The position numbers and the translations under genes were made by a program. 64,000 nucleotides of DNA. Source: Bugula neritina (Eukaryota; Animalia; Bryozoa). Under the pieces are notes generated by a model. It saw only the letters and a program-made list of their open reading frames with translations, ran no database searches and was not told the DNA's origin. The stretch spans positions 6,432,889 through 6,496,888 of the forward strand of contig OZ037772.1 of NCBI GenBank assembly GCA_964035545.1, written 5' to 3'. Positions 2,886 to 54,658 of this stretch are shown piece after piece; position 1 is the first letter of the stretch; the number at the start of each line of letters is the position of its first letter.

Positions 2886-2942
2886 GTTTAAAGAATGTTT
2901 AGTTCTCTAATGTATACTGTGATTTGTTGCACACCGAATATT

Positions 2943-11797: not shown

Positions 11798-12068
<271 letters not shown>

Positions 12069-12653: not shown

Positions 12654-15600
12654 TTAGAAGTGATAGATGGAAGAGTTTGATTCTAGCAAACTTTGAAATC
12701 TGGAAGACGTCACAGTGGAACACTGAAAGCTGTCACTAACTTCACCCGATTCTGCTTCACCTAGTTCTGCTTTACCTAGTTCTGCCTCATTAATATTGGT
12801 GTCAACAGAAACACAATCATTGAATGTATCCATTCCTTCATTGGTTGAGGTAACTGGTTGGTGCCTAGAGTTCTGTAGGTTATGATTCTGAGGTCGATCA
12901 GAGCAAGATATATACTTGGCGTCTACGTGAGAGCTGTCAGCTCCACTCGCATGCGAATTAAAATTTCTACTATTAAAGTATAACTGATCTTTAGAGAATG
13001 GAGTCACTGTATCTATAGTTCTGGTTCTAGGAGAACATATCTTTTGACTTGGGGTATTTGAATCTTTAGGATCAGTTGAAGCTGTCCCACAGATATTGCC
13101 ATTATGTGATGCATTGGTTTGAATACATTTCTGGTCATGTGATCTATGAGCTTGGTCATGTGATCTATTGGTCACTTGACCTTGGCCTTGAACAAGTTTT
13201 CTCCCATCATCCATTGCTAAATAAACAATAATAAGAATGATTGACCACCATTAACTAATGCTTTGAGAGCCATTCATAAACTAGGACCATCAAAATCATT
13301 CACAAGTAATAAACTTTTCGAAGCTAAGTTTAATAAACTAGTTTAATAAAAGCTGGTCATGGTAATAGTGGCAAACAATACTGATGACTAGACAAACTGC
13401 TAGGTCAATGTACTTTGTAACAGCTAAATTAATTTAAATCAGCAGCAGACGTTTGACCTCAATAAACAAATATTATAAAGCTATTCAAAGAAAACATGAC
13501 AAAATAAATACCAAATAAAATAGCGCTACTTATTTATAAATATTATCATAATAGTTTGAATTTCACTTCATCAGAGGAAATATCTTTTAATATTTTGTAT
13601 TTTCTTTTTATTCATACTCCAATTTAGAAAATTACCAATAGTAATACATTTTAGTAAGTTGTTTTCTAAATGACTTACCAGTCATGTGACTTGGATTAGT
13701 TGCTATTGTATTCAATGTCAAAGTATCTAAAAATAGAATAGGGTAAAAGTTATTTCAATACATAACAAAACTTGAACTGCACATTTTTCGTCAAAATTAC
13801 CAACTAATAAAACAAATTAAAAACTCACCAAACCCAGAATTATAATCCTTCACTTGTTCAATAGCCCAGTTTAAAGTTTCTTTCTACAAAAAAAATGACA
13901 TAGTTTAACTATTCTTTTGAATAATAATTCTATTCAGCAAATTTAATTTCTCCCTGTCTTTTAGCATATCTATCTTCTTTCTTTTGCATACTTAACAAAT
14001 TTAACTATCACTAGAAAAAGTTACATATGTTTATAATAATGACTCCAACTGAGTATAGGCTACAGAAACTATAGTTAGCTGTTTCTAAACCAGTATTTCA
14101 GCAAAACTTATTCCCGCATGCGGAGTTAAAACATCATAAAACATAGGCTCAACATGTTTCACAACCAATGCATATGGCACAAGCACAGAGCTAGTTAGAG
14201 TAGTCAAAGTGGAACCTATAAGTAACAGTTTTCAAGAAATTAAGCACTAACTTAAACTAATTTACAGCAACAATCAGTAATAACCAATTAATGATTGGCT
14301 ATTTGGATAAATTAATTTAATGCTAGAAAACCTAGTTGATCGAAACCTTAGCCAAAATTTAGACTAAGATGATTTAATTAATAAAAAACAGTCACCAGGT
14401 AATTTACAACAAACTTCAAAATTTAAAGAAAAACATCATATTTCAAGCAAGGAAAATTCAATGTAAATAAAAATAAAAAAATTATAAAGTTGGTTAAGAC
14501 TGACTTCTGACATAACAGCTGGAATGCATACAAGAAACTCGTAGTTTCTTACCAAGCCACTTTGCTCGTACTTAGACCAGGAATGTAAAACTATGGGGGG
14601 TTCTTCTTTATCCCGCCCCAACCCGTCATACTTGGACAAGTGCAAACTCGTTACCTGCAACACAGAAACCAGATTGTTTAAGAAATTACAGGCAGAAACT
14701 ACTATAATCTATTAAACAGAAACTACTATAATCTATTAAACAGAAACTACTATAATCTATTAAACAGAAACTACTATAATCTATCAAACAGAAACTATCA
14801 TAATATGTCTAACGGAAATTAACTTATAAAAAATATAAAAATGCAACTCCATTATAGAATCTGTGTAAATTGAAAGTATGTTGCTTAGCTACCATATAGA
14901 AGACTTAATTTCAGTTGGTTTATTAATCACACAAAGCTGCTGTAATGCACTGCTAAAATGTATTAAATATATGAAAATAAAGGTATACTATATATTTTAT
15001 ACTGTATTATATAATACAATATACATTATATTATAATATAGTATACAACATATTACGCTATAACCTACTACCTAGTACGTTTTACAGTATATTATTAAAA
15101 ATATAATTTAGCACATGATATAGCACATGATATAGCATATAACGTAGTATAATATAGTATACTATATAGCATACCGCTGCCCGAACAGGACCAAGCAGAG
15201 ATAGGTGAGAAAAATATAACATATCATGTAGTATAGTATACTACATTATATAGCATATCATAGAGTATAGTATACTACATTATATAGCATATCATAGAGT
15301 ATAATATACTACATTATATAGCATATCATAGAGTATAATATACTACATTATATATAACATATCATAGAGTATAATATACAACATTATATAACATATCATG
15401 GAGTATAATATACTACATTATATAACATATCATAGAGTATAATATACTACATTATATAGCATATCATGGAGTATAATATACTACATTATATAACATATCA
15501 TAGAGTATAATATACTACATTATATAACATATCATAGAGTATAATATACTACATTATATAGCATATCATGGAGTATATGATTTCCACTCAGTGTTTACAT

Positions 15601-18600
15601 CAAGTAGCTAATCAGCCAATAAACACTTACCAACTGTCTGGTCTCTGAAGGAATTCTTATTAGACTCAGGTCTCTATTTCTATTTAAAATGTAGTCTATA
15701 TTCTCTACTGGGACGTGGTCAAAGGCAACCTGTAAAACATTAAATCAAATAGTTTTAATACAAAGCGAAGTGAGTCAACAAACACCCAGAAATTAATTAG
15801 TTTTTGTTGGAATTGAGATAAAAAGCTAAACAGTCTGATAAAGAGAATATCAGTGTACATAGTTTAATTTATATTAGTATTCTCTTAAGATACTATATCT
15901 AGTGTGATATTTAAATATTGATAAAATACGTTTGGTGGCAGAAATATAGCAACAATGTATTTATTTAAAAAAATAGTAGGCAACTATTATAGCCTGGGTC
16001 TTAACTTTAGTTTCTAACAGGAGTGTGCTTGAATAAGTATTATAAGAGAAAACTGGTAGCATGAAGCAAATGCCTGCGCGAACTGAAACTTTGGGATGCC
16101 ACTTTGTGCTGATTTATGTGGTCGAATTGCTAGAACTATTTTTGTGATGGTCAACTTGGCTGAGCACTATTATAGTGGCTTCAATTTCGAGTTCTACTTT
16201 GATAATTTCATTTCAATCAATTGAAAGTTGCTGAGAACATCGAGTAAGATTTCAAAATAAAATAATTTAGGACATGGCAAATCTGATTGGTCACTTTAAT
16301 TCTGCTCTTACTGATTACTGTTCCATATGAGAATGATAGAAATTTCAAGTTTGTAAAAGACCTAATAATGAATTATAGCGGTGTGACAACTCTGTAATAG
16401 AACTTTGCTGAAATTTTCCAGACATGAGTCTCTATCGTATAGCATGTCCAACAAACTCTTGGGATGACAACTCACAACTATAGTAGGAGGGAAACCTGCA
16501 GCCTTAGGTTCAGTTAGTAGATTCAGTAAGGCTGGTCTCTCTAGCATCCCGTGATGCGCAGACGAGCTAGGTAAACCTTCAAAGTAATGGAGGTTCTCCA
16601 GAAGATTCCATGAGTATATGACGAGTATGCATTCACAGCTCATCAGCATATTCCTACATTCAAACATATTATATTGTATATACTAGTTGAGACAGATCAA
16701 TTAGGAAAAATTTCATTTATATGTCAAAACTCTGAAAACGCCTATAAGGTCTCTCTATTAGGCTACTTGGACCTAAAGGAAGCCATAAACAGAGGTATGG
16801 TAGTAAAAGGGTCATTTTACTCAATTATTTAGCTAAATTTTTTTTCGTGAGATATAGTAGTGACACTTACTGGTCAACTGCAGCGCTGTATAGTATGATC
16901 TCACAGTTGAAAAAGTCACAGAGCACTTGACACAGAGTGTCGTTCAGATGCTGGTAGAGTTCTTCAGAGATGTATGCCAGACAGACCTTACGACGTGGAT
17001 CCGAGGCTACCATATCTGAGAGCAGACAACAATAAATTATTAACAAAACTGGACGCAGAGGAAATAAAAGTGTTTATATAAACGGAAAATATAAACTCGC
17101 TAAAACAATCATGAAGTATCAAAAAGACTTCATATATCCAGTGTTAATTATACTGAAACTGCATTTACTAGCATATAAATTCCTAATGACATTATACCAC
17201 TTTATTATTTAATTCAAAAGATTGAAAGTATTTGAAAGTGATTACTTTGTAGAAAAAAATTAAATAAATAAATAAAATTTCTATACATTGACAAAGGCTA
17301 CATAGTATGATTGGTTAATGGTTACTACTTGGAATGGAAAGAAGATGAAGACAATGTATTGCCTCTAAACTTAAGTAATACTAACAAGTGATTTATTTAT
17401 AGAATAGGAGTTGTTTTCCCTGATATCTGGAGTAAACTTACTGTAGTAGCTTTTCTGTCCATTGCATAGACTGAAGCACCGCTTTACTGCCTTGGGATAT
17501 CTCAGAGAAAGCAATACAGCCAAGAAAACTGCAGCCATTATGACCACTGCACCAACTGCGGCCCCTATCACCCACCCGTCAACCACTACAACAATGATTC
17601 ACAGGCTAGAAGTTGTTTAGAACTAAAAGAAGTAACAAGAAGTAGGAGAAAAGAATATTATAAAACATTTAAAGTTAGCAGAAAAACATTTAACACTTGA
17701 AAAACAGTTAATAGAGATGATGAAAAAATTATTTACAGCTGCAACAGCCAATGAAGTTCCACGATACATACCTGGAGTTTCAGTGGTGCCTTTAATAGAA
17801 GAGTGTAGCCTACAGTCTGTGCATACACCATTAGCATAACACTGCTGACTTGGACACGGTGTCACAGGTGCTTGTCCTGTAGGGCGCATGGGATGGGGTA
17901 ACACAGCTGAGCTATTCTCAGTTTTATAAGTAGTTATTGTTTTAACTGTTGATGTAGAAGCTACAAAAGTTGAAAGGTATCAAATACATCTCACTTCAAC
18001 TTTGAGTCACTAAAGCATATATATGTTTATGAATTTATAAATATATACATACATACATACGCGCACACACACACACACACACTCGCGCACACACACTCAC
18101 GAGCGCACACACACACACACACACGCGCGCACACACACACACTCGCGAGCGCACACACCGCACACATTCTTTTTGTAACTGGTCAAGAAAGATAGTCGTA
18201 CAGATTTAAACACACAGAAAACCGGAAATGCACACACTGCACACAAGCATACCTATCAAAATCAAAATATGATATCTAAAGCTTGTTTTGTCTACTGAAA
18301 CAGCATTGCATTCACAAACTACTACTAGAATAGAATAAATTCTCTCAGATAAAATTAACTTTAGGTTGGAATTTCCCAAAACACTGCTCAGAGTTATTTA
18401 ACTGGAAGTAGCATACTTGTGAAATCCGGAGTCGTTTGAAATACTTGGAATGCAGTTCCTCCTCGAGATGAAGTAGAGTTCAACAGAGCTGTAATCTCCA
18501 CTATGTAAGTACTGTAACTATGCTTGAGAGAATCTATAGTCAAACTGTAGACTGGATTCTCTACCACAGAGTCATTACTGGCCATGTACTGGATCTGGTA

Positions 18601-21600
18601 GTATCTACACAGCTCAAACTACAATCAACACAAGAGTTCTGACATGCAATGTCTTATGGAACCAACTACTTTTAAGGCCTGAGAATCACACAAAATCATG
18701 TGACGATTTTCGTGAGTTATCCTCTCGTTATGACCAGCTACACACTCGTCCGACGAAACACATAATAAATAGTCCATGAATGAGTCTTGCACGAGATACA
18801 AACAGCAGAAAATTGTCAAATAGAGAAACGTGGTAGAAATTAAATAATTACTGTTGCTAAAATTCTATTGACCAATCAAATGTTAATTTTTTCGTCCATC
18901 GTCTTCATTGTGTACACCCAACGAAGACGATTTCATTTGAATTCCCTCAAATTTTCTCGCACGATTGTGTTTTCGTGTCAAATAGACGATTTCGCGTGAT
19001 CTTCACGAGTGTGTGGCCAGGCCTTTAAAATTACCTAAAATTATTTCATTATAAAAACCTCTAGCAGTGGCTTATAAGGGGTTAGCGTGTGCCTAGTAAG
19101 CATTCAGCCACATGTTCAAGCCGGACAAAGGCCAGTGGTGATGTTAGGAAGAGCATCCAGTTATAATTGCTCCTGTGCCTCATCTAAATAAGTCCTTAGC
19201 CAGCTTTAACAAAAATCCCTTTACATGAGGCGCTTTCTCACTGGGATAGTGACTAAAAACTTGAGTGAGTTTTAAAAACCTCGATAGCAGACAAATTTGC
19301 CTTTGCTGCACAATAGACCAATTGCTTGTACGTCATAAAACTACATTTTCTCTTACTTGATAAGTTCTGACATGGATCCAACCACTAATTTACAATTACC
19401 TAAAGTTAATGTATCACATAAACCTTTAGCAGAGAGATTCGCCATTGTATGCTACATATTAATGAACCAGTAACTTGTATATCATGAGAACTACAGTTTA
19501 TCTTACTTGATATCTTTATGAGTATTATTCAAAAGTAGGTTATTTGATAACTAATAGAATGCTGTCTTTTATAATTAAATATGAAATATATAATCACAGG
19601 CTTTATATTCTAAACTTTGTCTAAACTCTAAAACAGTATAGCAACTTGGTTCTAATACCACTCACGCACACAACTCTCGCAAGTTTAAATCACTCTACGG
19701 TCTGAAAGAGACCCCTGGTGTTTACTAAGCCAGCGCTCAAACCCTGTTGAAGTGATAAAATGTACATAAGAATGTTCCCCAAAATACCTAACTTACAAGT
19801 TTTTTTGCTAAATAGAAGCGCTTTATCCATATGACGTAGCCCACCACACTTTTGGCATCTAAAAGCAAAACATAGATTAAAACATAATAAACTGGGAACT
19901 TAGAGTTGTGTCTGCAATTTTTTCTATAAATTAAGACACTAGTTTTTGGCTTCAAGTATAAAGCAAGTCATAGAAGACAACTCCCTAGATGCAGGTTATA
20001 GACCTCAAAAATAAATTTCATCTGTGCTTGGGTACTGTTTGCCTATTTATACTATACTGCAAAGAGACTGAGCTGTTTGAAATTTAAAGGGAATTATAGA
20101 AGACAACTCTTATTATAAATGGAAAGAAACTTTGAAAACAAATGGAAACTGATTTGCTTAGCGTATGTTCATTGCAAACTTCAAAAAAAGATAGTTAGAC
20201 AATAAAACTGTAAGCTGAAATAAAAGCAAATTTGATCAAAACTTTCGGTGGTTGAAAGTGCGTGAAAGTTGGTCATTGAGTTTTTAAATTGTATGAAAAA
20301 CATTTGAAACTAGTTTAAATGTCAAAAACAATTTTTTTGAAAAATGATGTATTTATTTAGTGGAAGTTGTCTTTCCTCAATTAGCTAACCTTGAGAAGGA
20401 GATTGCCATTCGATGTAGAATCCATACTTGTTGGCATTGTTTTTGAAGACATAGTGGTGCAGCAGGACAGGCTTAGATATAGAATTTGAGTAAGATGAAC
20501 CACCACCCAATCCATGAGCCACGCAGTCACCTGATTAAAACAGCAATTCTATAATATTCCAAACTAATTCTTCATCCATATTTAAAATGTTCAATTTATG
20601 ATTATTTAAAACAATTCTTCAACTTTTCAACTAAATATCTATTTTCAAATTCATCACTGCTTCACTTTAAAACAATCATTTACTTGAACCAAATATAAAT
20701 TTAAAAGCCAACTGGAAAGTTACAGTTCGACTTTAATTAATATCTTATTTCCAAGAAAATGTCAATTAATGTAAGTGAATTTGGTTTATAAGATAGTCCA
20801 GGTTGTTTAGTTTGATTGAGAATTGTCCTTTCTATCCATCTTATTCTGTTAGGAAGGCCGTATTTACTTACTTCGGCTCTCGGATGATTGACAATCGTAG
20901 TTCTACAAATAGAGTAGCAGACGACATGAGTGTCTTCTGCTAATAGCTACAGTCGACTCCCTAACTTCTTGTATTCAACTCACGAACAGAATACCAAAAG
21001 GCTATTAGTACAGTTAAAAGTGTTTTTGTTAATATCAGTGCCTCACTTTGAAAAAAACATTAGCATCAACAAGTAGTTTTACCATAGAATGTTGTATTTT
21101 AGTTCCCTGTGATAAGACTTAGTAGATCACACACAGTTTTATTAGAATGAAACACAAACAAATACATATTTGTACATTATAAGAACTTTATAACAAATTA
21201 ATTAACAGGTTAGGCAAAGCCAGGCATATCTAACTTTCTTTCCGAGCCATATAATAAACGTAAATGTCAACTGTTGATCTACACAGTGAAATTAATCTTA
21301 TCTAAGGCTTTTGTTTATTTAGTATGTTGTGTGCTCAGCTGGCAACTAGTGGTGGAGCCAGCTACAGCAAGCACCCCTACAATTACACTTTTTTTAAACC
21401 AGGATGGTTTAATTTTACTGTTTAATAATTCACAACCATTAATGGTAGCGTAGGGCCACACTGTGAGGGCAAGATGCGTGGAATCCACACCAGCCCAAAA
21501 AGGAGTTGTTGCGTGAGGGTAAAATGTTGAGTGAGAAGTGCAGCAATTAGCCAGTGCAGGTTTGATCTAATTGGCTGTTTACCATTTAGCATGTAGGGAG

Positions 21601-23003
21601 TACTTTTTTAATTTCAATAAAAATAAATTAAAACAGTTTCATATTATAGTTTGCATTTTATTTTAGAGCAGGCAGGCATACAGTTCTGCAGATGTCTACC
21701 TATGCTTAAGTGCAGCAACATTTAATAATCGTAAACACAGCACAAGCCCTGAGTGTAAAACCCTCATAGTTTCATGCTTCAAGAAATGCAGATTGTAAAC
21801 ACTGCAGATCATTATTCAAACTAAAACAGAAAGCATGACTACAGGAGTTGTGTAGAATTGAGCAGAGATTAATATTGTAAGCTAACTTCTTCATTGATCT
21901 GAAAACTTTACTCTTCACTGCATTCTTTTTAAATTATTAAAAGACATTATATTAATATTCTATCATAACCTTGTTGTCTGACAGTGTTGTTCAAGCCTAT
22001 GACTACATGTGACTGCTATATGAATTGAGTTATTGAGTAAGTAACTGAAAGAGTGAGTGATTGATCCATTGATTGATTGAGAGAGTAACTGAGAAAGTGG
22101 AAGAGTGACTGATAGAGTGAATATTGGTTTATTGATTGATTGAGGGTGGGAGAGTTAGTGATTGATAAATTGATTTATTAACTGAGAGTAAGGAAAGAGT
22201 GAATGAGGGAATCATGCAGCTAGCATTTGTTGCTTGACACACTCGAGCAGTGCCTCAATTAACACAAGTATTTCTGCATAATTAATTCTATATCATCAAT
22301 GAATCATTCTGGTGCACAAAGCAAATTTACTCTAGTGAATGAAATGAATGGAAATTATTTGTTCACCAGCTCATGACAACAAAACAGCTTCACCTAACCT
22401 GCCCTGCCCCATGTGTATAGACTATTAGTTGAAAAAACATTCCACCATTGCAGTGATTATGGCACTTGAGAGTAGTACAAGGTGACAATTGTACAATGAT
22501 ACAGGATTGAGGTTCAGCAATTGTAAATATTTCTAATGAAATTTAACACTCATTTGTGGTTTTAAAATCGCACACTCATTTAAACTCTATATGAGAAGTC
22601 AAACTCAATAGAAAATAAAGCAATAATACAAGTGCCATTAAAGGCCAACCTGTCTTATAGTAAAAACATGAACCTAGTTTATTCTACTAATACTTTTCAA
22701 CTTATATGGACAAATCGATATCTCTGCTCTAAAAATGCTTTCCTCATTTCATCTTTTATTTCAAATAATCCAACAGGGTTCTGAATTTTTTCCAAGTGAT
22801 ATATATTATTACCAGTATTTACACTGAATTTCACAACGTGTTTTCATGTCTGTTATATGTAGTTAATAAATAAATCAATCAATCACTCTCAACACATAGG
22901 TTGAATATCTTACTGGAAATCCTTTAGGAGTACAGTCGGCCATTGTAACTGGAAGAGGGGTTTGAAGAAGCAATAGAATCACACACAATAAGGGTCGCAT
23001 CAT
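12654..23003 (-). CDS. IL-17 receptor-like / SEFIR-domain type I membrane protein, short paralogue (682 aa); exons 23003-22914, 20902-20872, 20530-20390, 19858-19797, 18618-18417, 17960-17772, 17585-17442, 17015-16871, 16653-16476, 15729-15631, 14654-14553, 13883-13829, 13726-13679, 13216-12654
   Basis: All 14 GT-AG exons are phase-compatible (2049 nt). Signal peptide MMRPLLCVILLLL; DCTPKG...C...C lead-in and FN3-like strands (FYIEWQSP, GYVIWI, CRYYQI, TYIVEITA); TM WVIGAAVGAVVIMAAVFLAVLLSL; SEFIR/TIR-like core RKVCLAYISE...CEIILY...CILVIYS...VVAFDH...RIPSETRQL. Exon-for-exon homology with the gene at 30713-54658. Confidence 0.85.
14690..14800. repeat. 23-bp tandem repeat (ACAGAAACTACTATAATCTATTA-like), ~4.5 copies
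   Basis: Directly visible, intronic. Confidence 0.9.
15215..15578. repeat. ~33-bp minisatellite (TATCATAGAGTATAATATACTACATTATATAGCA-like)
   Basis: About 11 imperfect tandem copies, intronic. Confidence 0.92.
18040..18165. repeat. (TACA)/(CA)/(CG) compound microsatellite
   Basis: Directly visible. Confidence 0.9.
18675..19025. mobile_element. MITE (PIF/Harbinger-like ends), family copy 1
   Basis: Ends AGGCCTG...CTTCACGAGTGTGTGGCCAGGCCT in TTA/TAA context; interior colinear with 30061-30443. Confidence 0.75.
19063..19270 (+). mobile_element. tRNA-derived SINE copy
   Basis: Family core ggtgatgttaggaagagcatccagttataattgctcctgtgcc and 3' tail. Confidence 0.85.
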
Positions 23004-23811
23004 GACTACCACTTTGAGTTTCTCCCTCAACCGAGGCTAGCAGTGTATAAATGTAGAAGATACTTCAACGTTAGTGTCCGTTGATGGTCATTCAAAGGGC
23101 CTCATCAGGTCACTTTCGATTTCATCACTGATATTTTGACACCTGAATCTGTAAAAATTAACAATCCCATTATCAGCAAATTTACAATATTTTAATGGCT
23201 GTGGGAAGTATTGCTCCTCCTATGACACTAACACTTGCAGTAGAAGACGGCAATATTACATTATAAGAGTTTTAACTACATACTGCACCTAGACTAACAT
23301 TGTGAAATGCCCCACCACTCACTAAGGTTAGGTTATGAGCCTGTAATTAAGCATACAATAAAACCCCACTAACAGTAGTTCACAAAACTACAACAATATC
23401 ACTGAAAAACTCTGCTAGCATAAATAATTACTTAAGACCTGGACTATATTTTTCTCTGTTTACTAACTACCTAGCTTACACTACTAAGGTAAAGCACAGA
23501 TAAGCAGTTTAGTAATATGTAGTTAGCACGTAGGCTCAGAAACAAGAAGCAAGATAAACCCTTACAAGTGATAAACTGCTGACTGAAGTTGATAGATTTC
23601 AGGTTAAACACAGTCAGTCTCAGCATGTTTAATAGTTTAGTTTCCAAGAAATAATAATCTGTTATATAACAAACTGCCTGCCAATCACTTCGTTTCCACT
23701 GAATGAAAATCAAACCACAACCACAAGTTGATGCATACCGGAACCACAAATTCGTTGGTAAAAAAGATTACAGTTGAGCTACTTCAACTCAGCCTTTACA
23801 TAGGCCACTTT

Positions 23812-36700: not shown

Positions 36701-39700
36701 TAGAAGTAAGACGACTCCCGCGGTACACACCCCGATAACTATTCCGTTTATTGAGGCTGAAAAAGAATGCAGATATGAGAGCCTGTGTAGATTAACTGCT
36801 CATGAAAACAGTATTGAAGGTTAATAGAGAAAATATACGGATACAGACTTCACACTGTTGCATGAGTAGATACTTCTTATATATAATATACTGAAACAAC
36901 CTGCTAAAGCTAGAGACATGAGGAGGGAACTTTCAAGTGGGAAACCCTAAGCATGCAGTGAAATGTATTACTTGAGTAATCTTCCACATTGCCAGAGATT
37001 AATTGCACACATGCCAATGGCTTTACTGCCTTTTAATAAATTAGTTAAATTTCAAAACATCAATTTCTATTTTCAATAATGACCGTTGATTGGAATAAAA
37101 AAACGTAAAACTGAAATGTAGATTACTCAATAAGTCTAGACAATGTTCGTTAGGCAATTAAACTGAGTGAAATCCACACAACAGCTGTATTTTGCTGCTA
37201 GGGCAAAGTTTTTTTAGTGGTCTGCGCAGAAATCCGAGCTCATAACTATACCCTGTCTAGAGAGCACTTTTCTGACATCAAATTACGTTATGTATATTCT
37301 CAGAGAATCGTAGCAGAGGCAATCTTGGGAATTAGTTAAAAAGGTTTGACTAAAACTACTGTTTCAATTGATTTCATCAGAAAAGCTTTTCCAGCTAAGG
37401 ATTGGACATGACAACATGCTTGTGTAGTTAAGCTGTAAGCTAACATTATAGTCTATGTTATTATCATTCCACCACCTTTGCAACCTATCTTTGCCCAGTT
37501 TCAGTGTAAACAGAATGGAGTCGATAGCAAACCTTGGTAAATATCGCTAAGCAAATAAAAACATGAAGACATTTACTCGAATTTTTCCAATCAGAAACGT
37601 TTAACCTTGACTTGACATTCTCATAAAATAATCTGATGAAAAAAAACCATTGACTTCTGTTAAAACAATAAACTCACAAGGGTTCTTGAGCTGCTGAAAG
37701 GGAGACACGGCTTTAGTACATGGTTCACACGTCCCGTGAATATTGCACATTCCTGCCTCCTCGTTACAAAGAGTCGAGATAAACGTTGGAACTACCTATC
37801 AGTGAGAGAGATAAAAACAAGTTTACACGCAATAGTATTAGGATGAAGTGCTGGAATACAAGTACAAATCTGTCGACAGCATTATCGTATATATTGTAAA
37901 ACCTTGTATATTATTATGAGTTAAGTTATTATCAAATGATTCTTCAATACATCTTCATTTCTAACTTTCTAAACGGAATTCAGCATTCTATGATGTAAAG
38001 TAATATATCCATGAAACATCATATTCCTACATTATATAATATCCTCTATAATTGTACACTAGACCATAGATAATGTTATATTCTATAACGGATACTATAC
38101 TATATATAATATACTCTATAATTTACGCTAGATCATATAGCATATACTCTATAATTTACACTAGATCATATAGCATATACTCTATAATTTACGCTAGATT
38201 ATATAGCATATACTTTATGATATACACTAGATCATATATATCGATATGCCAGCTGGAAGAGGATATGTTGAACCTACTAATGATGTGATAGGTGAAGTGG
38301 GTAGAGGGTATTTAGTATCCTCTACTCAGATGCAGATAAAACATAATATTGAGAGTTACACTCTACTACAAAAGAAATAGCTTGAAGCAGCACTGAGTTG
38401 GTGGCTACTGAGTGCAGTGGTTGGGGTCTAGAGTTATAGTCTGGATAATGTCTATTAAAACCTTGCACTCAGTCACCCCTAATTCAGTGTTGCTTTCAGC
38501 TATCCCCCACTAGAGAAAAGGTTCCATTAAAAATATATCAAGTATAATCGGTTATATTATTTTATTCTGCAGAAGTTTATAACATTTACCTCAACCTGAA
38601 GGGAGTCGGGGTAGCGGAACAGTTTCTCAACATCACTAGTACTGAATACCACTTGGGCCTCGTGCCACGTTTCTTGGGCGAGTTTGACATACTAAAAATA
38701 ATGTATTATGACATTAAATGATATGAAACGAAAAAGGAATAAGAATAAAACAATATATAATATAATACAATAAAACATATTAGGGAGCAGCTGTGAATAG
38801 TGGTTAGAACATTGGGTTAGTAAACTCGAAGTCTGAGTTTGATGCCATTGAAAGCCACTGGTGATGTTAGGAAAGGCATCCCGAAATAAAATTGCTCCTG
38901 TGTCACAATAAAAACAAGCTTTTATCATCGGGGGTTCTCACAGGGATGGCGAACACAAACTGTATGAGTTATAATATAATAAAATATTACAAAATATATA
39001 ATATATAACAACGCAATAAAACATAATATCGAATAAGAAACAATAAAAGTACGAGTGAAACTCAACATTAAATATATACAAAAAGTAGTATTCCTAAAAG
39101 AACCATTTTAGTGAATCATTCACACTTTGATTTCACAGTCTGATCTCCCATACTGTCAAAAACATAACAACTGAAATAGAATTTGTTTTATAATTTCAGG
39201 TTTAAAATGTAACAATCCTGATAATTGTTAACCATGGTGTCAGGTTATTTTCACGTATATAGGTAGGGACATATGAAGCTGAATGTCTAATGAAGTGTCA
39301 AAAGTTGAAAAGAGTTATTAAGCTTACCTCTGACATCAATCTAGTCACGCCGTTACGAGCTTTAGTCACTATGATATCATACTGAGTTATTAGATAGTGC
39401 GCAGGAGCCACCCAAAAAGTTATTAAAATGCTATTATTAGAAAATATTTCCAAAGTTGGTACTTTAGTTGAGTCAGAGCCGTAGTCTGGTCCTATAAAAG
39501 AACAGGGCAGTTGAGTGTAAAGATGCAGTAACACTGGAATAATACCTTGTAATGTAATGAGAGTTTAGGTAGCAGTGAGTAGGGGGTGATGTTGCCTAGA
39601 CTGGCAATAAAGTGACCGGTAGAGTGAATAGGTGAGTGAGTAATTAATTAAGTGAGTGAGTAAATGAGTGAGGGAGTGATTAGTAACTGAGGGAGTAAAT

Positions 39701-42700
39701 GAGCGACTAGTAACAATGTGGTTGGTAACTGAGTAAATGGTTAGTAACTGAGTGAGTGGTTAGTAACTGAGTGAGTGGTTAGTAACTGAGTGAGTGGTTA
39801 GTAACTGAGTGAGTGGTTAGTAACTGAGTGAATGGTTAGTAACTGAGTGAATGGTTAGTAACTGAGTGAGTGGTTAGTAACTGAAGGAGTGGTTAGTAAC
39901 TGAGTGAATGGTTAGTAACTGAGTGAGTGGTTAGTAACTGAAGGAGTGGTTAGTAACTGAGTGAATGGTTAGTAACTGAGTGAGTGGTTAGTAACTGAGT
40001 GAGTGGTTAGTAACTGAGTGAATGGTTAGTAACTGAGTGAGTGAATAAACATTGTATCAGCGAATTATTAAATATTATTTTTACAGGAGAGCTCAACAAG
40101 AAGATGGAAATTCATCCAAATGTAGATATATACACATATCAATAGGCTGAGATATATTTAAGTTGATTTACCATAAAATTAAACTTGTTTATTTTGATAT
40201 AAAAATTTATTTTCATATTATTATAAATAGATAAAAGTTCAAGTTTACTTAGAGTAAGGAAACACACCTGTAACAGCGAATGCCTGTGATATTTCTATAT
40301 TTTCACTGTCAACTATAATGTTGCAGAAGTTTCGTGGACAAAACGTGTCTCGGTAGTACGGCGTAACCTGAACAAATACAAAATCTGCAAAACATGATGA
40401 AATCTCCAGAAATAGAATCTCAAGACATTGAGGTAGGTGCAGTAATGGAGAACTTGAGAAAAGCCTGTGTTCTAGATTAGAATTGTAGCAAAAAAGTTGT
40501 GTTTTTGCGTCCCAAATCAAAATTCAAAAAGAAATTTAAAGAGCTTAGGCTATCTCAATTTCCCCTACTACAGCCCCTAAATGAAGATATTAGCTTGCTA
40601 TATTGCTACACAGAGACTTCACCAAAGCTATGATGCCATTATCAGAGGGCTCATAAAAAGGAAAGATAACTTACATCTAAACGGTACATCCCAGGATGTA
40701 AATCACTGAAATTAACTTGTAAATATTCTTCTTCTATAGGCTAAAAAGAAAACAACATCAGTGTTTTATACTGTTTATGCTGTTTATAAATGTTAAGCTC
40801 AATAAATACACACAGGTTGTTCAGATTAACCTGGGTTTATTTATTGGGCTAAAAAGAAATTATAATCAATAAAAGAACGCAACAGCCCTTCGACTACCTA
40901 GGTCTAAATCTATGCTCAGGGTGACGGTTTTAACTTTAGTTTATTAATTGGGGTTGTCTCCTCAAAATATAAGCTTGTCATATAGTAGAATAAAAAAATT
41001 GGGAGCAACAGTGATCTAGGGGTTAAGTTGCGTTTATACCTTTACAGAAAAAAGTTCCGAGCTACAGTTAACATCACTCGTCCAAGCACTCCTTTACAGT
41101 TTTACTGAAAACCCTTAAAATCGCACTGATGTGGAAGCTCACCTTCTAATAGCAAAATATAACTTGCTTAATTGCTATTTGATGCCCTTTGAAAACGTAA
41201 TGAATTAGTTGAGTTGACGCCGTTAAAGTGGTAATTGAGAAAGGCAGCTGCTATAACTATAAACGTGAATACCTACATCTACAAGGAGTTATCATTCCCT
41301 TTTACTGTTTATCTGAAATCGCCGATTAAGTTATCACAAATCAAAAACTTTGACCAGCGCCTTTTACAACGTAATGCAACTCAGTAAAATTGAATTTCTG
41401 AAGGACTGACAGAAAATCGTGATGGCATAAACGCAACTTTACAGTGTTTGCTTAGTAAACACAAAGTCATAAGCTCAAACCCCAGCAAAGGCCATTGGTG
41501 ATGTTAAGAAGAGCATCCAGTCGTAATTGCTCCTGTGCCAAATAGTCACATGAATAAGTCACTAGCCTGCTTTTAAAAAATCATTTCTATCAGGTGCTTT
41601 CTCAAAGGGGTGGTGACTATAAACTTTTGTGAAAAGAGTATACATGTATGAGTAATAGTTATATGTTGAGTTATAGTGACTAGAAACTGACGTGAGTTTT
41701 TATGACAGAATAAAAACTTACAGGAGAAAATTCATAAATTTTAAGCTCTTCATTTTTTAAAGTTGTAACATAAGTGTTGTTGGAGTGTAAAAGAGACACG
41801 TTGTATTTAGTATGTTTGTACTGAGCTCTATGGTGAGCATAGTAGCCTGTGGTCCTGAACCAGGAGATGGCCCCGAAGTCTACACTCGTGTCAAAAGAAG
41901 CATTCAGGGAGTATGGCGGGAGAGTTGTCACTTCGGCTAAAATGACGGAACACAAGTAAAAAAGAGAAAATAAATCCAGAAAGTTATCGTCAATAATTCC
42001 ATTCCTTAATTGATATTTTATTTAGCACTCACAATTTAGCAATGGCTTAACCAGGCGCAAGCAGTTAGAAACATGCTTGTTTACTTTAAAGATAACACAA
42101 CTATTTCATTGTCAAATAAAATTATCTCCTAAAAATTCGTCAAGTGTTGGCAAGTAGGAGATTACGTGTTATAAAAGTTACAAGCTTGAAAGATAATGCA
42201 ACTGATAGAATGGATATATAATGTTATGTATTATTGAAATATGCTAAAGAGAATTTCATAAAAACGAAATCGTGGAGCAAAATTGACACTAATGCAATAG
42301 GAAAAACATGCTCACATGACTCATGTCTTTTGTAAGACACAATCAGAAATATCAGCATTCCTATTGGATAAACCAGACTGCACTCACAGCGAATCACATT
42401 ACACTGCATGGATATCTATTATTAGTATGGACCAAAAACTCCTGCACTGTGAATCATGACTTTAGTTTAACTAATGGTACAGGCCTTTATAAACATTGAC
42501 ATTTTATAAACTGATGGTTGCCTCACTTTAATAACGATACAAGTGACCTCAGGATAAAGTAGCACATCATCTGAAGAGGATTGTGTTTTGACCCCCCCCC
42601 CCCCCCAATGAGATTTGGGAGATAGACTTGGAACTCTAGAGATTAAGTAGCTTTGATCACTACAAACAGGAAAACTAAATATACTAGCCAGATTTATAAA

Positions 42701-45700
42701 AGTCCCCTTTTACATAAGAGAAGACAATTACTGCAGATGTAATAGAAAAGCAATCGAACCGAACTGGCTGAGATCGAACTGAGACCGATCCGTGGAACAA
42801 CACTGATGCGATATGTCAGAGATTACATAATCACTGCTAGAGAAGAAACTTATATTGAAGCAACTGGGTCAAAAATATTACCCGAGAAAACAAAACATAC
42901 ACCAAAATTTGACTTGACATTGACTAAAAACACTTGATTTATAGAAACATAAAAATATCTTCACTCACGTAATAATGAACTGAGCGTGAAGAACGTTTTA
43001 ATAACTGGTGATGAAAATCGTTTATTAGAGTGCGGGATGGTGGTTATCTCCACCCTGTACTCTTTATCCAGATGGTTGAGAGAGTCTTTCTGAAAAGTGA
43101 AGTTGGCCGCTTCACTTATCTCATCGGTCACATTGCCAGTAACAGACACGTTATAGAACCTGCACTCTTCCAAGAACTGCAACTTACAAAATAACTCGAT
43201 TCAAATCGACAGCTCGTGTGACGAAATATTACAACACACAATGGCAAGCAGAGTATAATGTTTAAAAAAATTATATATAAAGCTTTTTTGTACTAGACTG
43301 GGTTTGGGGACTGCACTTCATCTGGGCAGGAGTTTGTGCCTGTTCCACCACTAGTTCTTATTACTAATTCAACTGCAGGGCTAGAATGACTCAGCTTGAC
43401 TCAGCTATATAGCTGGCTACTGAAAGCTATTAAGCTGGCACATTATAGAATAGTGGTTACTTTATACTATTTATAGCAAGCAGATGACAAATACAATTAG
43501 CAATCAGTATTCTTTTAGGTATAGACCCACAAGGTTGGTAAACCATCAGTTGCTAATTGATTCCCAGTTATAGGTTAGAAATAAAGATGAAATCCAACCA
43601 GTGCATGAGATAACTTTTATATCATATATAAAAAAAACTTATTATTTTCAATTTTTTTTTAAATTTTAGATCACAAAACCAAACTTCAGACTATACCATA
43701 ATCTCAGATAATTTTAAAACTATCCATAATTATCGTACAGATAACTTTAAAACTATGGTAGCAGCACATTAATAGGAAACACTGTATAATTAGAGTGAGA
43801 CCAGGTAACGACACACCTATCTAATATTACTTTGCTGAGATGATGCAACACAAGGAGTAACACCATGTTTAAAGCAATATCACACCAACCTTTGATGCAG
43901 TAGAATAATAATATAATTTGAAAATGTATCCCTTTGTTTTCTGTGCATCTGCAAAGTAAACTTATTAATAAAAGCACCAGTCAAAAATAATAAAAACAGA
44001 TACAGTTTTGCTGGCTCTGAAATAAAATAATAAATGGTCCATTATTTCCACAATTTAACAAAACTATAGACTGAGTTCATCACAACTATTACCTTCTGCT
44101 GTGGGTGGTTTCCAGGTAACAGTTACACCTATCTTCATGGTTTTTGGGTTCACAAATGAATGAGGCTCAAAGATAGCCACTTTGCTGATGGGTTCAATGT
44201 TTTCTTTCAACTCGTCAGCCTTGTCACATATACCTAAAATATCAAGGATTCTCAGGCTTTAACAAATACAAACTAAACAGAGCATAGACTGAGATCCTTT
44301 AACCTCTTCAGGGGTAACAATCTATTCACACTCTCAAAAAACAAACCCAAATATCAGCTACAATAATTTCATGACAAAAATAAAGTTTCTAACTAGTTGA
44401 CTATTTTCAAGGCGACTACGAATTTCACAGAACTCGCCTATTGAGTATCAATTTCCTAGAAATTATTGCATAACATGTTCACAGATGTTAGTAGTGTACT
44501 TATCATGATATAAGATTTTTTCTGAGTTAGCAAAGAAGCCCAGTTCTAGGAAATCCTTCTAAGAGTTGAATTTATCTATAGAGGTTGAAAACAACACCTC
44601 AGACTAGCTAGGGGTCTGATGATTATCATTTCCATTATATTCATTACAAATAAAAGACAAACAACTCCAAATTGCAACATTATTGATAAAATAATCCAAT
44701 TTTTAATATGCATAGTAACAGCTTGCATAAGCTAAATGGCACCAAAGAATAAAATGGAACAATAACTAATCGTAATTCACATATTTTGGTACATAGTTAC
44801 ATTATATCATAATCTATAATATATAATATTTTGGTACAATAAAATTTAAATTATAAATGATAGGCAACAGCCTGTGTTTCAGTGATATTAGTCTGGGTTT
44901 AGAGTATTTTGACCAGTTCCTATTGAAAAATGGGAATAATCTCTAAAAGTTATACAAAAATGTGAACAAACTAGAAATGGCCACATGAATTGCTTCAACA
45001 TTTTTAAGCTTGCAAGTAGGTCTAAGGTGAAAATATGAGAAAGGAGATGCAGTAACAGTCACACATCATGTATCTCCAACTTATCACCTCATTTACTTCT
45101 CTGCATTGGGGTAATTAGCCGCAGACATGCATGTGAAAAAGCTAATATGTATTACAAGTGTATATATTAGCATTTTTGTTCCTCTACTGCTTATTCAAGC
45201 ATCCTCTGTTTATGTACTTAGGTTTGTTTTTTCCTGGTGTAGTTCTTATGTATTCTATTCTCTATTGTTTCCCTCATTACTTACTAGAGCTGTACTAATA
45301 CTGTCAACTTTCCAAAATATCTAATATTCTTTTAATTAAATTAAAATAAATGATATAGCCAATGAAAAATGATATACAATTTATGGCATGGCTAATAAAA
45401 TAGATATTAAATCGAAAGCAAAAAATATCTACAAAATAGTCAAATATGTGCATATATCAATAATAATATTAAACAGGCTGCTAGGCCTTCCTAAAGTGAT
45501 TATTGCTACTTAAATTATATTCGTTTGGCAGCTGTCCAAAAAGACTTGATGTCAATGTTAGGCTAACACTAACTAAGGTTCCTTTTAATATGTTCTTATC
45601 AGCAAAACTGCAATATCATTATGTAGGTCCAAAGATTACTGCTTCTACCAACAATTACTACCATTAGAGCAGTCAACACATAGTTGACAAGGAAGTTAAT

Positions 45701-51700: not shown

Positions 51701-54658
51701 AGATTGTTCAGTTCTCTTGCTAAAATATCTAATGTGTTTTTGAAAGTTTTGCTTGCTAGCAATCTAGAGATATAAAAAAGGTCAGCAAGTATTTGAAACT
51801 GTAAACCTTGACGCAGCTTCATCAAAGCCAATAAAAGTTTATCTTGTCTTGTTAACTTTTTTCTGAGAGTGAGAACCTTTATCTTCAGACATATAAATCT
51901 AAATATAGAAAATAAAGAATGAAAATTAAATTATGATTCAAATTATAATGTATGCGCTAAATAAATTTTGGGCTTAGTTTGTATTCATTCAGCAGTTTTT
52001 ACCCTCTGGTAAGTAGCTTCAGTTATATTTTGCAACAACTATGAAGTTCAAGAACTGCTAGCTGAAGGCTTGACCCAATATATCACCATCCAAACAGAAT
52101 GTAATGTGTGTCAACATGTGTTACATAATATTGTAACAGTACATGGTAAGCTAGATGTATGAATACATGCTTTGAATTAAGTTGAGTTTAAACAAATAGT
52201 GTTGACAAACAATTATTACTTAATTTTATAATTATACTATAACTAATTCAAACCCATATTATTTCTAGAATAGCATTTAATAATGTTTGTGAATAAGTGA
52301 AACTAGTAACAAGTGTAAACCATTTTAGTTTTGAGCACTGAGTTAGTTTTCAGCTAAAAATTAGATTTGGAGGCCACTTTTGATAAGCTTTAAAATAAAC
52401 CAAGGAAAATTTAAGTCAAAACAATTTACTTTTCCTGGAGAAAGTGAGTCAATTTGTCCACAAATAAAAGACTGCTGCTTGTTTAAATAAAACCCTAAAC
52501 TAAATAAGTCAAAGCATACAGATGACCCCTGTGGTATTTATGAATATCTTACATAAAACAACATCTTTAATAAAAAATGTATGAATGATGTACTCACACT
52601 GCAACAAATTTAATTAAAATGACAGTTTTACTACACATCAAATTTAATCAATGTAGAAATTTTAGCATAGTGAGACTTGCATTGTTTATTTGTAATAAAC
52701 CATAGTCTATCTTTGCAATGAGAAAATTATAATTTTCACCTTGCTAAAAAATAGTATAGAGAACGTGTAGGTATTCCAGTATAGAATTTAGTTTGCTCAT
52801 CTGTAGTGGTGAAAGTTTTAAAAACTTTTACTTTTTCAATAGTTGCTTTTTGTTTAAACGTGGAACTTTTTAAGCCTTTTCTTCCAACTTTTGATTTTCG
52901 TCTATCAATAGAATGTGCAGATCTTTTTTTCTAAGTAGTTGATGATTCTGGTAACTCAGTTACTTCTGATAAAGTCTGACTATGAGGATGGCTGTCAGAT
53001 GAGTTCTGTTGCTCTATATCAGCTGACTCTGTTGATAACGTTTTCTGTTTGCTTCCTTCACATGTTTCATTAAAACCACTGTTTTTTGTGCGTCTTACAT
53101 TATATGCTTTAGTGCGTTGGTAACCCAAATGAAAGGTTGGAGTTGGATTTTGCTCAGTGGGCTGACCATCCTTATGATTATGATAGTCTGCTATGCTCTC
53201 TGTAATCTACAGCCACCATTGGTGACTGATGAAATTTAGAATTTGAAGTAAAAATGTGTTATTTTTACCTGTGCCATTATATAGAAATTTAAATCTAGCT
53301 TTTATATAATATTCTTGTAATTTTTCATTATAGCAAGAACTAAATTACATTGTTTTCACACTAATATTTCATATATTTATAGTTTATTTGAAAGCTTACG
53401 TTGTGGATGTTGACTGCTATAGAAACTGACTACTATTTTCAAAATTTAAAAGGAAAACAAGTTCCTGGTGCAGAAGTGGCAGAATATGTAATACAATTTT
53501 TTTCAAATTGAAAGTAAGAAATGGGGTCATTTCAGCATTCATAAGCTGCACATAATAGCTTATGTGTATATTTATACGGTGTGGACTTGCTATTACTGCG
53601 AGCAACAATATTACCAGCATGGGTGGTTGATTTAACCTCTTAGTAGTTCCCATGGCTTACATACAATAAAATTCTAGTTGAATAGAATATTTACTATTGT
53701 AAAGTACAAAACAAATGACCAGAATATTTCATTTGTTAAACAGAAATTTTGTAATACTACTGTGGATTGGCTACTGTACATTAGCTAGATGTAGGCGGAG
53801 TTTACACTACCCAGCCATCCAGATGCATATACTAAAGGGCCATTCAAAAACCAGCCAATCGAAGTCATGTACCAAATTCACAGATGTTTACTGCAAGCTT
53901 CCAATGCTAAACAATAACCCATTCAAGCTGCAACAACAAATAACTACTAAGCTGGCAGTTATGTAATAATTGGCCTTAAGTTGCAAAAGTGTACCAGGTC
54001 ATTTTTCTAGACATGCAATTTTTAATTGCGTTTTATAAACACTTAATTTAGACATTTTGAAAAATCATTTCAAGAGTCATCAATTTAAGATATGAAATTA
54101 AATAATGCATGAAAAAAAGTTGCACAACTAGCTTTTAGAAGCATGCATCTTGCAATTGAACTTGCAGAATTTTATATCGGTTACAATGGTAAGACATTGA
54201 CCTGGTACACTTCGCTGATTGGCTGAGTTTTACATGGTCTATTACGCTACAGGGGCTTCAGGATTCCAAACAACAAATGGTTTCCATAATGTATAATGTA
54301 GAGCAAACTATTTAACTGTAACACTAGTAACTATCACAAGAATGACAAAATCTATATAAACTTGAGTTGCCTAGTTGAATCAAGATTATAGAGAGTGGAA
54401 ATTGTTTAAGTGAGAAATTTAGCTCAGCTTCCATCTGGGCTGATATCAAATATTTAACTATAACACTAGTAACTATGATAAGAATAAGAAAATATATATA
54501 AACTTGATATGCAAGTTGAATCGAGTAGAAATCTTACCTGAATTATTAGAGTGACTGCAGGTAATGATTGTCTGACCAGGAGGTGTGCAGTCTGTCATGA
54601 GAACAGGTGAGATATTATAGAATACTACTACCAGTAATACAATAGCAATATATGTCAT
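30713..54658 (-). CDS. IL-17 receptor-like / SEFIR-domain type I membrane protein, long paralogue (913 aa); exons 54658-54538, 44233-44093, 43948-43890, 43176-42969, 41936-41722, 40740-40675, 40367-40268, 39491-39328, 38691-38590, 37795-37678, 36756-36607, 35852-35702, 35284-35104, 34764-34666, 34156-34055, 33689-33635, 32834-32781, 32456-32138, 31515-31460, 30993-30713
   Basis: 20 phase-compatible GT-AG exons (2742 nt). Signal peptide; D1 resembles IL-17RA D1 (CTPPG...C...C, GVTVTWKPP, KGYIFKL, ECRFYNV, NFTF...DKEYRVEITTIP); two more FN3-like units (DLHPGMYRLDVTPYY...CPRNFC; ILITFWVAP...QYDIIV); TM GIVIGVCTAGVVLLLVFTILLVI; SEFIR-like RPKVCLAYVSE...CDVITY...YVLVMYS...AVFDH...FALPSHIKQL. Confidence 0.85.
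31564..31799 (+). mobile_element. 5'-truncated RTE-clade LINE 3' end with 12-bp TSD
   Basis: Translates EDIRRVHEMKVAGKRNRGRPKHRWQDTIRK...EEDAQNRVRWRSLI, typical of RTE C-termini. ATATCGTATTAT at 31552-31563 and 31800-31811. The tail AGAGATAGGTGAGAA recurs at ~15197 and ~27112. Confidence 0.85.
33130..33300 (+). mobile_element. tRNA-derived SINE copy (internally deleted)
   Basis: Core aggccattggtgatgttaggaagagcatccagtcataattgctcctgtgcc. Confidence 0.8.
34203..34640. repeat. 22/18-bp minisatellite (GTGTTGACACATACATACAGTA)
   Basis: Fills most of the intron between exons 34764-34666 and 34156-34055. Confidence 0.95.
34805..35013 (+). mobile_element. tRNA-derived SINE copy, full length
   Basis: agggagcagccatggtctagtggttaga...ggatcgaaccc...ctataaacttgcgtgagt. 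Confidence 0.9.
35297..35645. repeat. 16-bp minisatellite (CTCACAGTTACAGTAA)
   Basis: Directly visible, intronic. Confidence 0.95.
36210..36590. repeat. Two adjacent degenerate tandem arrays (~22-bp TTAGTAGCTGACCT...; ~31-bp AAAGCTCAGCCAATTAAATGCA...)
   Basis: Visible imperfect repeats just 3' of the TM exon. Confidence 0.75.
38090..38240. repeat. 36-bp tandem repeat (ATACTCTATAATTTACGCTAGATCATATAGCAT-like)
   Basis: Three to four copies visible. Confidence 0.8.
38782..38969 (+). mobile_element. tRNA-derived SINE copy (diverged)
   Basis: agggagcagc...ggtgatgttaggaaaggcatcc...aattgctcctgtg...ctcacagggatggcga. Confidence 0.8.
39720..40045. repeat. 19-bp minisatellite (TGGTTAGTAACTGAGTGAG)
   Basis: About 16 copies. 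Confidence 0.95.
41026..41438. mobile_element. Tourist/Harbinger-like MITE (413 bp) nested in a SINE spanning 41001-41632
   Basis: TIR AGTTGCGTTTATACC / GGCATAAACGCAACT; TTA duplicated at 41023-41025 and 41439-41441. Removing it restores the SINE head. Confidence 0.85.
45925..46106 (-). mobile_element. tRNA-derived SINE copy
   Basis: Reverse complement of the family core. Confidence 0.85.
50714..50765 (-). repeat. tRNA-like (SINE head or tRNA pseudogene) sequence interrupted by the transposon; remainder at 54243-54256
   Basis: The reconstructed empty site reads GCCCCTGTAGCGTAATTGGTTAGCGTG...ATTCGAATCCCAGTGGGGGCA on minus, with A- and B-box-like motifs. Confidence 0.65.
50766..54240 (-). mobile_element. 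Fold-back, decayed ISL2EU/PIF-Harbinger-type DNA transposon with ~870-bp inverted arms and AT TSD
   Basis: Arms 50766-51637 and 53370-54240 are near-perfect reverse complements. AT flanks both ends. Minus-strand relics: THAP C-terminal-like DGQPTEQNPTPTFHLGY (~53120-53170), DEQTKFYTGIP (~52770-52802), and HTH_Tnp_4-like QDKLLLALMKLRQGLQFQILADLFYIS...LIVFPTRE (~51640-51850). Confidence 0.85.

Follow-up and report, generated by a model that had tools for sequence, protein, structure and literature searches.

The 64,000-nucleotide stretch of the Bugula neritina genome analyzed here (the window) carries two genes on the minus strand, termed gene A and gene B, and the data support their identification as tandem paralogues encoding predicted type-I membrane proteins. 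Gene B encodes a long receptor-like chain with three ectodomain units (D1, D2 and D3), while gene A encodes a short one with D1 only, followed by a stalk rich in Thr, Ser and Pro. The account we favor, and hold to be somewhat better than an even bet, is that the two are tandem duplicates in a strongly diverged branch of the interleukin-17 receptors (IL-17Rs), in which A would be an accessory or modulatory chain of the ligand-binding chain B.

The window lies on contig C8 of a 216-Mb eukaryotic assembly with a GC content of ~33%. As a first-pass annotation of the window had remarked, the genes were largely invisible among the open reading frames (ORFs); both appeared only as fragments in bacterial-style ORF lists, and stop-to-stop frames were therefore listed for exon modelling. 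Models were built from these frames, the similarity between the A and B paralogues, and GT/AG sites, with regions compared frame by frame; for gaps in the models, phase-compatible AG...GT exons were enumerated, and the DNA was read at every candidate exon. The predicted gene A extends from 23003 to 12654 (13 exons, 2001 nt, 666 aa) and the predicted gene B from 54658 to 30713 (18 exons, 2547 nt, 848 aa). The gene B ATG at 54658 and the end of the gene A stop codon at 12654 coincide with the outer limits given by the annotation. All introns were GT-AG, and the GC fraction was 0.43-0.44 in exons versus 0.31-0.33 in introns. The gene B stop and the gene A ATG are 7.7 kb apart, with a separate start codon and signal peptide for either gene.

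Nine homologous exon pairs demonstrated identical phases and near-identical lengths in the two genes: 141/141 (1->1), 62/59 (1->0) and 202/208 nt (0->1) in D1 for A and B, respectively; 144/150 nt (1->1) for the transmembrane (TM) exon; 145/151 (1->2) and 178/181 nt (2->0) for the cytoplasmic domain; and 99/99, 102/102 and 55/55 nt (0->1) downstream. The claim of two complete genes with matching exon phases was thus borne out by these pairs and by the canonical introns. The structures differ at three places. Gene A has an extra intron inside the region that corresponds to gene B exon 1, resulting in the 31-nt A exon 2; gene B has one extra intron in the tail compared to the single terminal exon of gene A; and gene A has no counterparts of B exons 5-9, which encode D2 and D3.

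Three junctions were weaker than the others: those of the 31-nt A exon 2, the donor of B exon 3, and the B exon 17->18 junction with its GAG acceptor. Inclusion of A exon 2 yielded the C-x9-C-x8-C spacing that is also found in gene B; a donor inside A exon 1 that skips this exon was rejected, as it destroys the Cys spacing common to A and B. For gene B, an alternative model of 17 exons and 770 aa uses an acceptor at 30993 that joins exon 16 directly. By tblastn, B residues 707-848 aligned with the A terminal exon as one high-scoring segment pair that crosses the junction (31% over 153 aa, E 3e-4). The 18-exon model was therefore preferred, and the ORF at 32456-32138 is supported as exon 17 despite the weak GAG acceptor to 30908, with both models being possible isoforms. 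A cDNA-like pattern of the exon 8/exon 9 junction had no match in metagenome contigs, and a search for related loci with exon profile A2 found none.

Both proteins have two hydrophobic segments, one N-terminal and signal-like and one internal TM segment (residues ~243-267 in A and ~437-460 in B), and these hydrophobic windows give A and B the type-I topology of the IL-17 receptor family. The B ectodomain has 431 aa, 10 N-x-S/T sites and 10 Cys, and is composed of D1 (23-176), D2 (177-304) and D3 (305-~401), followed by C-x6-C-x5-C-x2-C; the long gene with three ectodomain units proposed in the first-pass annotation is present in the model. The A ectodomain has 238 aa, 3 N-x-S/T sites and 9 Cys, with D1 at 23-175. 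A 41-aa stalk with 16 Ser/Thr and 6 Pro lies between D1 and the Cys motif and is probably O-glycosylated. A D1 and B D1 shared 27% identity over 172 columns (z=22.6-24.3; the score was reached by 0/500 and 0/300 shuffles), while A D1 had no similarity to B D2 or D3 (z 1.0 and -0.1). No remnant of D2 or D3 was found by tblastn in window positions 1-30700, which contain gene A and its flanks, and the gene A intron between the exon ending D1 and the stalk exon measures only 456 nt. The description of a long gene and a short gene, the latter with D1 alone before a Thr/Ser stalk, is therefore correct at the genomic level. The juxtamembrane four-Cys motif is common to both proteins, and their low-complexity tails carry the same motifs in the same order with the same end (CxSVDTN, DSFxCST, SRF, IYHF-stop), which suggests a common docking or trafficking function.

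Evidence that gene A is maintained came from a 2.8-kb Joint Genome Institute (JGI) metagenome contig (L002), which is orthologous to A exons 6-9 with 88% DNA identity (~12% diverged). All eight splice sites of these exons were kept (8/8), the exonic indels relative to A were +3, +3 and -18 nt, and the ratio of nonsynonymous to synonymous substitution (dN/dS) was 0.36, with a dS of 0.14, over 218 codons. The kept splice sites, the in-frame indels and the dN/dS indicate that gene A is under purifying selection, which marks it as a maintained gene and not as a copy in decay. In a DNA run, continuous ~100x coverage of 17300-23100 was obtained in short pieces, none of which spanned the whole stretch. 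The same run showed allelic differences within gene A exon 3 (20390-20530) at 20466, 20506 and 20530; we read the change at 20530 as converting the Ser codon across the A exon 2/3 junction to Asn.

Family tests on A and B were scored one exon at a time (~20 exon pieces), with D1, D2 and D3 each split over 3-4 exons. B exon 4 matched Pfam ILCR1_N (PF25519) with 27.3 and 27.6 bits (E 4e-6 and 3.2e-6) over profile positions 100-151/164, the curated cut-off being 27 bits, and the matched stretch of the profile is where the C-terminal half of D1 would be expected. This Pfam family corresponds to the N-terminal domain of ILCR-1, the IL-17 receptor of nematodes. A weaker match, in colinear order, was obtained for B exon 8 with Ig_ILCR1 (PF23608; 16.1-17.1 bits, E 0.012 and 0.0057, below the cut-off of 27); a genome scan with Ig_ILCR1 found nothing. 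Generic fn3 and other beta-sandwich families were unmatched in the exon-wise Pfam scans. D2 and D3 carry L-x-V-x-F...Y-x-h-x-V motifs, a likeness to FN3 at the level of pattern. The best match of a D1 exon among PDB profiles was the FN3 domain of EphA2 at E=1, a result that fits strands E-F-G of an FN3-like pattern but proves nothing. Because of the ILCR1_N match on the B D1 exon and the weak colinear Ig_ILCR1 match on D3, the data support an ectodomain of the IL-17R lineage, the closest recognizable relative being the nematode-type ILCR1. The annotation of the genes as an IL-17R-like pair held for the ectodomain, through ILCR1_N on B D1 and the homologous D1 of A; its cytoplasmic half, a SEFIR domain, was not detected.

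A cytoplasmic domain of ~190 aa is common to A (residues ~285-480) and B (~480-678), with 36% identity over 193 aa, and starts ~29 aa past the TM helix with KVCLAY(I/V)SE. AlphaFold2 prediction of the B exon 12 fragment, made from a three-sequence alignment, gave a strand at 13-18, a helix at 19-36 and a strand at 39-44 with a mean predicted local distance difference test (pLDDT) score of 77. STIR (SEFIR/TIR) domains begin with such a beta-alpha-beta unit. In the sequence downstream of it, amphipathic stretches take turns with hydrophobic segments of strand-like character (YVLVMYS, VLMAVFDHV, TLFALP); B exon 13 alone was predicted as all-helical with low confidence (pLDDT 60), an uninformative result. 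We infer from these features that the whole cytoplasmic domain may have a SEFIR/STIR fold.

Several results weigh against assigning A and B to the IL-17 receptors. On the ectodomain side, the ILCR1_N score of B is just at threshold and covers one exon, gene A had no direct Pfam match in the exon-wise scans, and the vertebrate models IL17R_fnIII_D1 (PF16556) and IL17R_fnIII_D2 (PF16578) had no match in the genome, scanned exon by exon at E<=1. On the cytoplasmic side, the genome scan with PF08357 (SEFIR) recovered one other gene, on contig C2, and neither A nor B; exon-wise Pfam scans of A and B at E<=10 detected neither SEFIR nor TIR; the PDB chains with a SEFIR or TIR were not matched by exon profiles A1 and A2; and BLAST and hhalign gave no significant alignment of the spliced domains with the canonical C2 SEFIR. 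With the first cytoplasmic exon alone, hhalign against the C2 SEFIR gave a probability of 0.9%, though in the expected register. The SEFIR domain assumed by the first-pass annotation therefore escaped every one of these methods. Foldseek searches with the 49-aa fragment returned nothing below E 2, the first-ranked hit being a TIR domain at chance level. An exhaustive phmmer search of 1.84 billion proteins with B exon 13 recovered as a true relative only an exon of the gene A orthologue (P0001, on contig L002); the second match, a leucine-rich repeat (LRR) protein, was rejected as spurious, and a feature search of the ESM Atlas with the same exon gave no usable match. The putative strands B and C are only ~13 residues apart, and the helices alphaB'/alphaB, which define SEFIR and set it apart from TIR (PMC4014126), therefore cannot both be present.

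The literature on these receptors provides a context for such negatives. SEFIR domains share <20% identity with each other (PMC4014126). In about half of the invertebrate IL-17Rs, the FN3 domains are barely detected by domain models and have been called 'degenerated', and degeneration of SEFIR is also frequent, less so than that of FN3 (PMC11087794). A degenerate SEFIR in A and B is plausible on this basis.

Other components of the pathway were sought in the same genome. Two genes with an IL17 domain (PF06083) were found on contig C3 at 13708992-13709207 (-) and 13719958-13720173 (+), both at 33.8 bits and over the cut-off, and the ligand family is therefore present in the genome. The two matches are in inverted orientation 11 kb apart, and an IL-17-like ligand gene was probably duplicated here, recently and in inverted form. 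The C2 gene (G000:C2:13466001-13476000, + strand, locus L003; ~13468000-13471600) is a third receptor-like gene with a TM helix and a canonical SEFIR, which is split over three exons and scored 40.1 and 26.3 bits in one Pfam scan and 25.2 bits in another. Like A and B, it encodes a single-pass membrane protein with the cytoplasmic domain after the TM helix, and it probably belongs to the same pathway. It differs from them in that its SEFIR is seen by Pfam and in the intron positions within the domain. Two further observations count against an IL-17R assignment: no part of the C2 receptor was detectably similar to A or B, and the PF08357 genome scan, which gives a lower bound, yielded no additional SEFIR gene, for example an Act1/CIKS adaptor.

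Besides the C2 gene, two known systems offer the closest comparisons. The ILCR-1 and ILCR-2 receptors of nematodes share with A and B the type-I topology and the ILCR1_N match of B D1, B D3 giving a weak, sub-threshold Ig_ILCR1 match, and in both cases two different chains are encoded per genome, which in C. elegans are co-receptors (PMC7190641). B differs from them by the extra D2 between the matched domains and A by having no second domain; the SEFIR described for the worm receptors was not detectable in A or B, whose tails carry motifs of their own and end in IYHF-COOH. The canonical IL-17Rs (vertebrate IL-17RA to RE and conserved invertebrate members) combine a double FN3 with SEFIR and signal via CIKS/Act1; the statement in the first-pass annotation that IL-17RA has two FN3 domains is correct. 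A and B resemble them in the signal peptide, the beta-sandwich units (predicted for A and B), the TM helix and an alpha/beta domain ~30 aa past the membrane. IL17-domain ligands in the genome are a further likeness, and sequence degeneration of FN3 and SEFIR is known in that group (PMC11087794). In contrast, A and B were unmatched by the IL17R_fnIII_D1, IL17R_fnIII_D2 and SEFIR models, their alphaB'/alphaB segment has only ~13 residues, no CIKS/Act1-like SEFIR gene appeared in the genome scan, and a D1-only member is absent from the architectures of PMC11087794, which comprise degenerated double-FN3 forms and forms with added EGF or Ig domains. IL-17Rs with three or more ectodomain units and with 'degenerated' FN3 and SEFIR have already been described (PMC11087794), and the pair is therefore less exceptional than the first-pass annotation implied. 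Degenerate IL-17Rs and heteromeric pairs are already known; what is new is a D1-only member that is under selection and whose STIR-like domain is shortened.

From this arrangement we infer a ligand, a heteromer and a signalling route as follows. The two genes arose by tandem duplication, probably within a fast-evolving, ILCR1-like branch of the IL-17 receptors. B keeps the three-unit ectodomain, with D1 being ILCR1_N-like, D2 unassigned and FN3-like by pattern, and D3 weakly Ig_ILCR1-like, whereas A is probably the derived copy, in which the five exons for D2 and D3 were deleted and the Thr/Ser/Pro stalk took their place. Both chains retain the four-Cys motif, the TM helix, the putative alpha/beta cytoplasmic domain and a disordered tail with the shared motifs. 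B may be the ligand-binding chain for one of the IL-17-like cystine-knot ligands of the genome, and A, which cannot form a D1-D2 ligand cleft, may use the juxtamembrane, TM and cytoplasmic modules common to the two chains to associate with B or with another copy of A. Signalling would run via the degenerate STIR (SEFIR/TIR-like) domain together with the C-terminal motifs that both tails conserve. Known IL-17R complexes bind their ligand with paired FN3 domains (PMC11087794) and nematode ILCR-1 and ILCR-2 are co-receptors (PMC7190641); given this mode of binding and the heteromers of known IL-17Rs, the most fitting role for A would be that of a chain accessory to B or modulating it.

The main rival is that A and B, although of the same family, do not form a pair but are independent receptors that diverged after duplication, their adjacency reflecting the tandem duplication itself. 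B might then bind an IL-17-like ligand, with A binding something else or acting alone as a ligand-independent or decoy-like regulator. The divergence between the genes is deep (27% in D1, 36% in the cytoplasmic domain), they are 7.7 kb apart with separate start codons and signal peptides, A is under purifying selection of its own, and tandem position alone is weak evidence of interaction. However, both proteins preserve the Cys motif, the cytoplasmic domain and four C-terminal motifs, the exact C-terminus among them, which suggests that they act on a common downstream machinery. In vertebrates and C. elegans, pairing of IL-17Rs into heteromers is the rule (PMC11087794, PMC7190641). We consider independent function unlikely, and the strongest of the alternatives.

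Still less likely is that A and B are not IL-17 receptors at all but a lineage-restricted family of single-pass receptors that combine ectodomains of FN3/Ig-like type with a cytoplasmic alpha/beta domain that is novel and has no relationship to SEFIR/TIR, the ILCR1_N match reflecting shared beta-sandwich features and not common ancestry. All SEFIR tests were negative, the ILCR1_N match is just at threshold on one exon with Ig_ILCR1 below threshold, the canonical SEFIR receptor of the genome is dissimilar, and, apart from the exon of the gene A orthologue, B exon 13 found no relatives in 1.84 billion proteins. Nevertheless, the ILCR1_N match (E 3-4e-6) survives correction for ~20 exon pieces while fn3 and other beta-sandwich families remained unmatched, and the second, colinear match goes to the other ILCR1 ectodomain family. 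The confident beta-alpha-beta unit ~29 aa past the TM helix is placed as in STIR domains, and degeneration of this kind is documented in genuine IL-17Rs (PMC11087794).

Doubtful to a similar degree is a bolder form of the pairing, in which the IL-17-type complex would be of a new kind, with the D1-only A as the obligate partner of the three-domain B. One chain would supply a minimal, mucin-stalked single domain, and both would signal via a shortened STIR without alphaB'/alphaB plus the conserved C-terminal module; as the genome scan detected no Act1/CIKS adaptor, the pathway would be adaptor-independent or differently wired. That A is a truncated, decaying and functionless duplicate, leaving B as the sole working receptor, would fit its loss of two of three ectodomain units and its lack of a direct Pfam match, but is very improbable given an intact 666-codon frame over 13 exons with good splice sites, the conservation pattern in L002 described above, and C-terminal motifs and a stop position conserved with B. 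Positions, phases and contents of the exons underlying the preferred reading of A and B as a long and a short IL-17R-like chain are listed in Table 1.

Table 1. Predicted exons of genes A and B, in window coordinates
Exon	Position	Strand	Length (nt)	Phase	Content
A exon 1	22914..23003	-		0->0	ATG, signal peptide, D1 start (DCTPKGFP); similar to B exon 1
A exon 2	20872..20902	-	31	0->1	NYDCQSSESR; sole phase-compatible candidate with good sites; predicted
A exon 3	20390..20530	-	141	1->1	D1; length and phase equal to B exon 2
A exon 4	19797..19858	-	62	1->0	D1; resembles B exon 3
A exon 5	18417..18618	-	202	0->1	D1 C-terminal half (YIVEITAL motif)
A exon 6	17772..17960	-	189	1->1	Thr/Ser/Pro stalk, then C-x4-C-x5-C-x2-C; conserved in L002
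A exon 7	17442..17585	-	144	1->1	TM helix and juxtamembrane segment
A exon 8	16871..17015	-	145	1->2	Cytoplasmic domain start (KVCLAYISEE...); B counterpart predicted beta-alpha-beta
A exon 9	16476..16653	-	178	2->0	Cytoplasmic domain, middle
A exon 10	15631..15729	-	99	0->0	VAFDHVPV..., part of cytoplasmic domain
A exon 11	14553..14654	-	102	0->0	
A exon 12	13829..13883	-	55	0->1	...YNSGF
A exon 13	12654..13216	-			187-aa low-complexity tail; CxSVDTN, DSFxCST, SRF, IYHF-stop
B exon 1	54538..54658	-		0->1	ATG, signal peptide, D1 start
B exon 2	44093..44233	-	141	1->1	D1
B exon 3	43890..43948	-	59	1->0	D1
B exon 4	42969..43176	-	208	0->1	D1 C-terminal half; Pfam ILCR1_N match
B exon 5	41722..41936	-	215	1->0	D2, first part
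B exon 6	40675..40740	-	66	0->0	D2
B exon 7	40268..40367	-	100	0->1	D2 end
B exon 8	39328..39491	-	164	1->0	D3, first part; weak Pfam Ig_ILCR1 match
B exon 9	38590..38691	-	102	0->0	D3
B exon 10	37678..37795	-	118	0->1	D3 end and C-x6-C-x5-C-x2-C
B exon 11	36607..36756	-	150	1->1	TM helix
B exon 12	35702..35852	-	151	1->2	Cytoplasmic domain start; AlphaFold2 strand-helix-strand
B exon 13	35104..35284	-	181	2->0	Cytoplasmic domain, middle
B exon 14	34666..34764	-	99	0->0	
B exon 15	34055..34156	-	102	0->0	
B exon 16	33635..33689	-	55	0->1	...YDSGF
B exon 17	32138..32456	-	319	1->2	Tail, first part; colinear with the middle of the A terminal exon
B exon 18	30713..30908	-			Conserved C-terminal motifs and stop

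The window also contains repeats. Intron 1 of gene B contains, at 50763-54243, a perfect 749-nt inverted repeat (50889-51637 / 53370-54118, 100% complementary) with outer 132-nt arms (97%) and a 1.7-kb spacer carrying transposase-like ORF pieces; it represents either a foldback or terminal-inverted-repeat transposon or an assembly palindrome. A repeat resembling a short interspersed element (SINE) occurs in introns of both A and B (~19270-19085, 41640-41470, 33250-33150, 35015-34833, 38890-38850 and 28393-28274), and the contig depth in the DNA run at 18658-19239 ranged from ~100 up to 360,000. Intronic and intergenic minisatellites with periods of 16-34 nt and 11-21 copies were located at 34203-34641, 35298-35644, 25317-25736, 39718-40043, 15214-15577 and 11797-12056; these and a (TA)130 microsatellite account for long spurious ORFs in the ORF track. 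A Gypsy/Ty3-like retroelement occupies 2895-6548 (+), with two long ORFs (614 and 547 aa) in which motifs of reverse transcriptase, RNase H and integrase type are found; the GC content of this stretch is 62% versus ~33% in the genome. Flanking it, downstream of gene A, are Cys-rich exon ORFs of PAN/apple-type appearance at 1109-1471 (-) and 10445-10720 (-).

Although IL-17 signalling is ancient, the fast divergence of its receptors has left the repertoires of invertebrates poorly mapped. A conserved, selected IL-17R-like chain with D1 only would offer a natural experiment for what this domain can do by itself, be it to capture a ligand, to pair laterally or to modulate. A cytoplasmic domain that is conserved between paralogues yet lies outside every SEFIR model marks a limit of sequence-based annotation, and the C-terminal motifs shared by A and B are candidate docking sites. 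The value of the pair lies chiefly in comparative immunology and in the annotation of this genome, and current views of the receptor family are not overturned by it.

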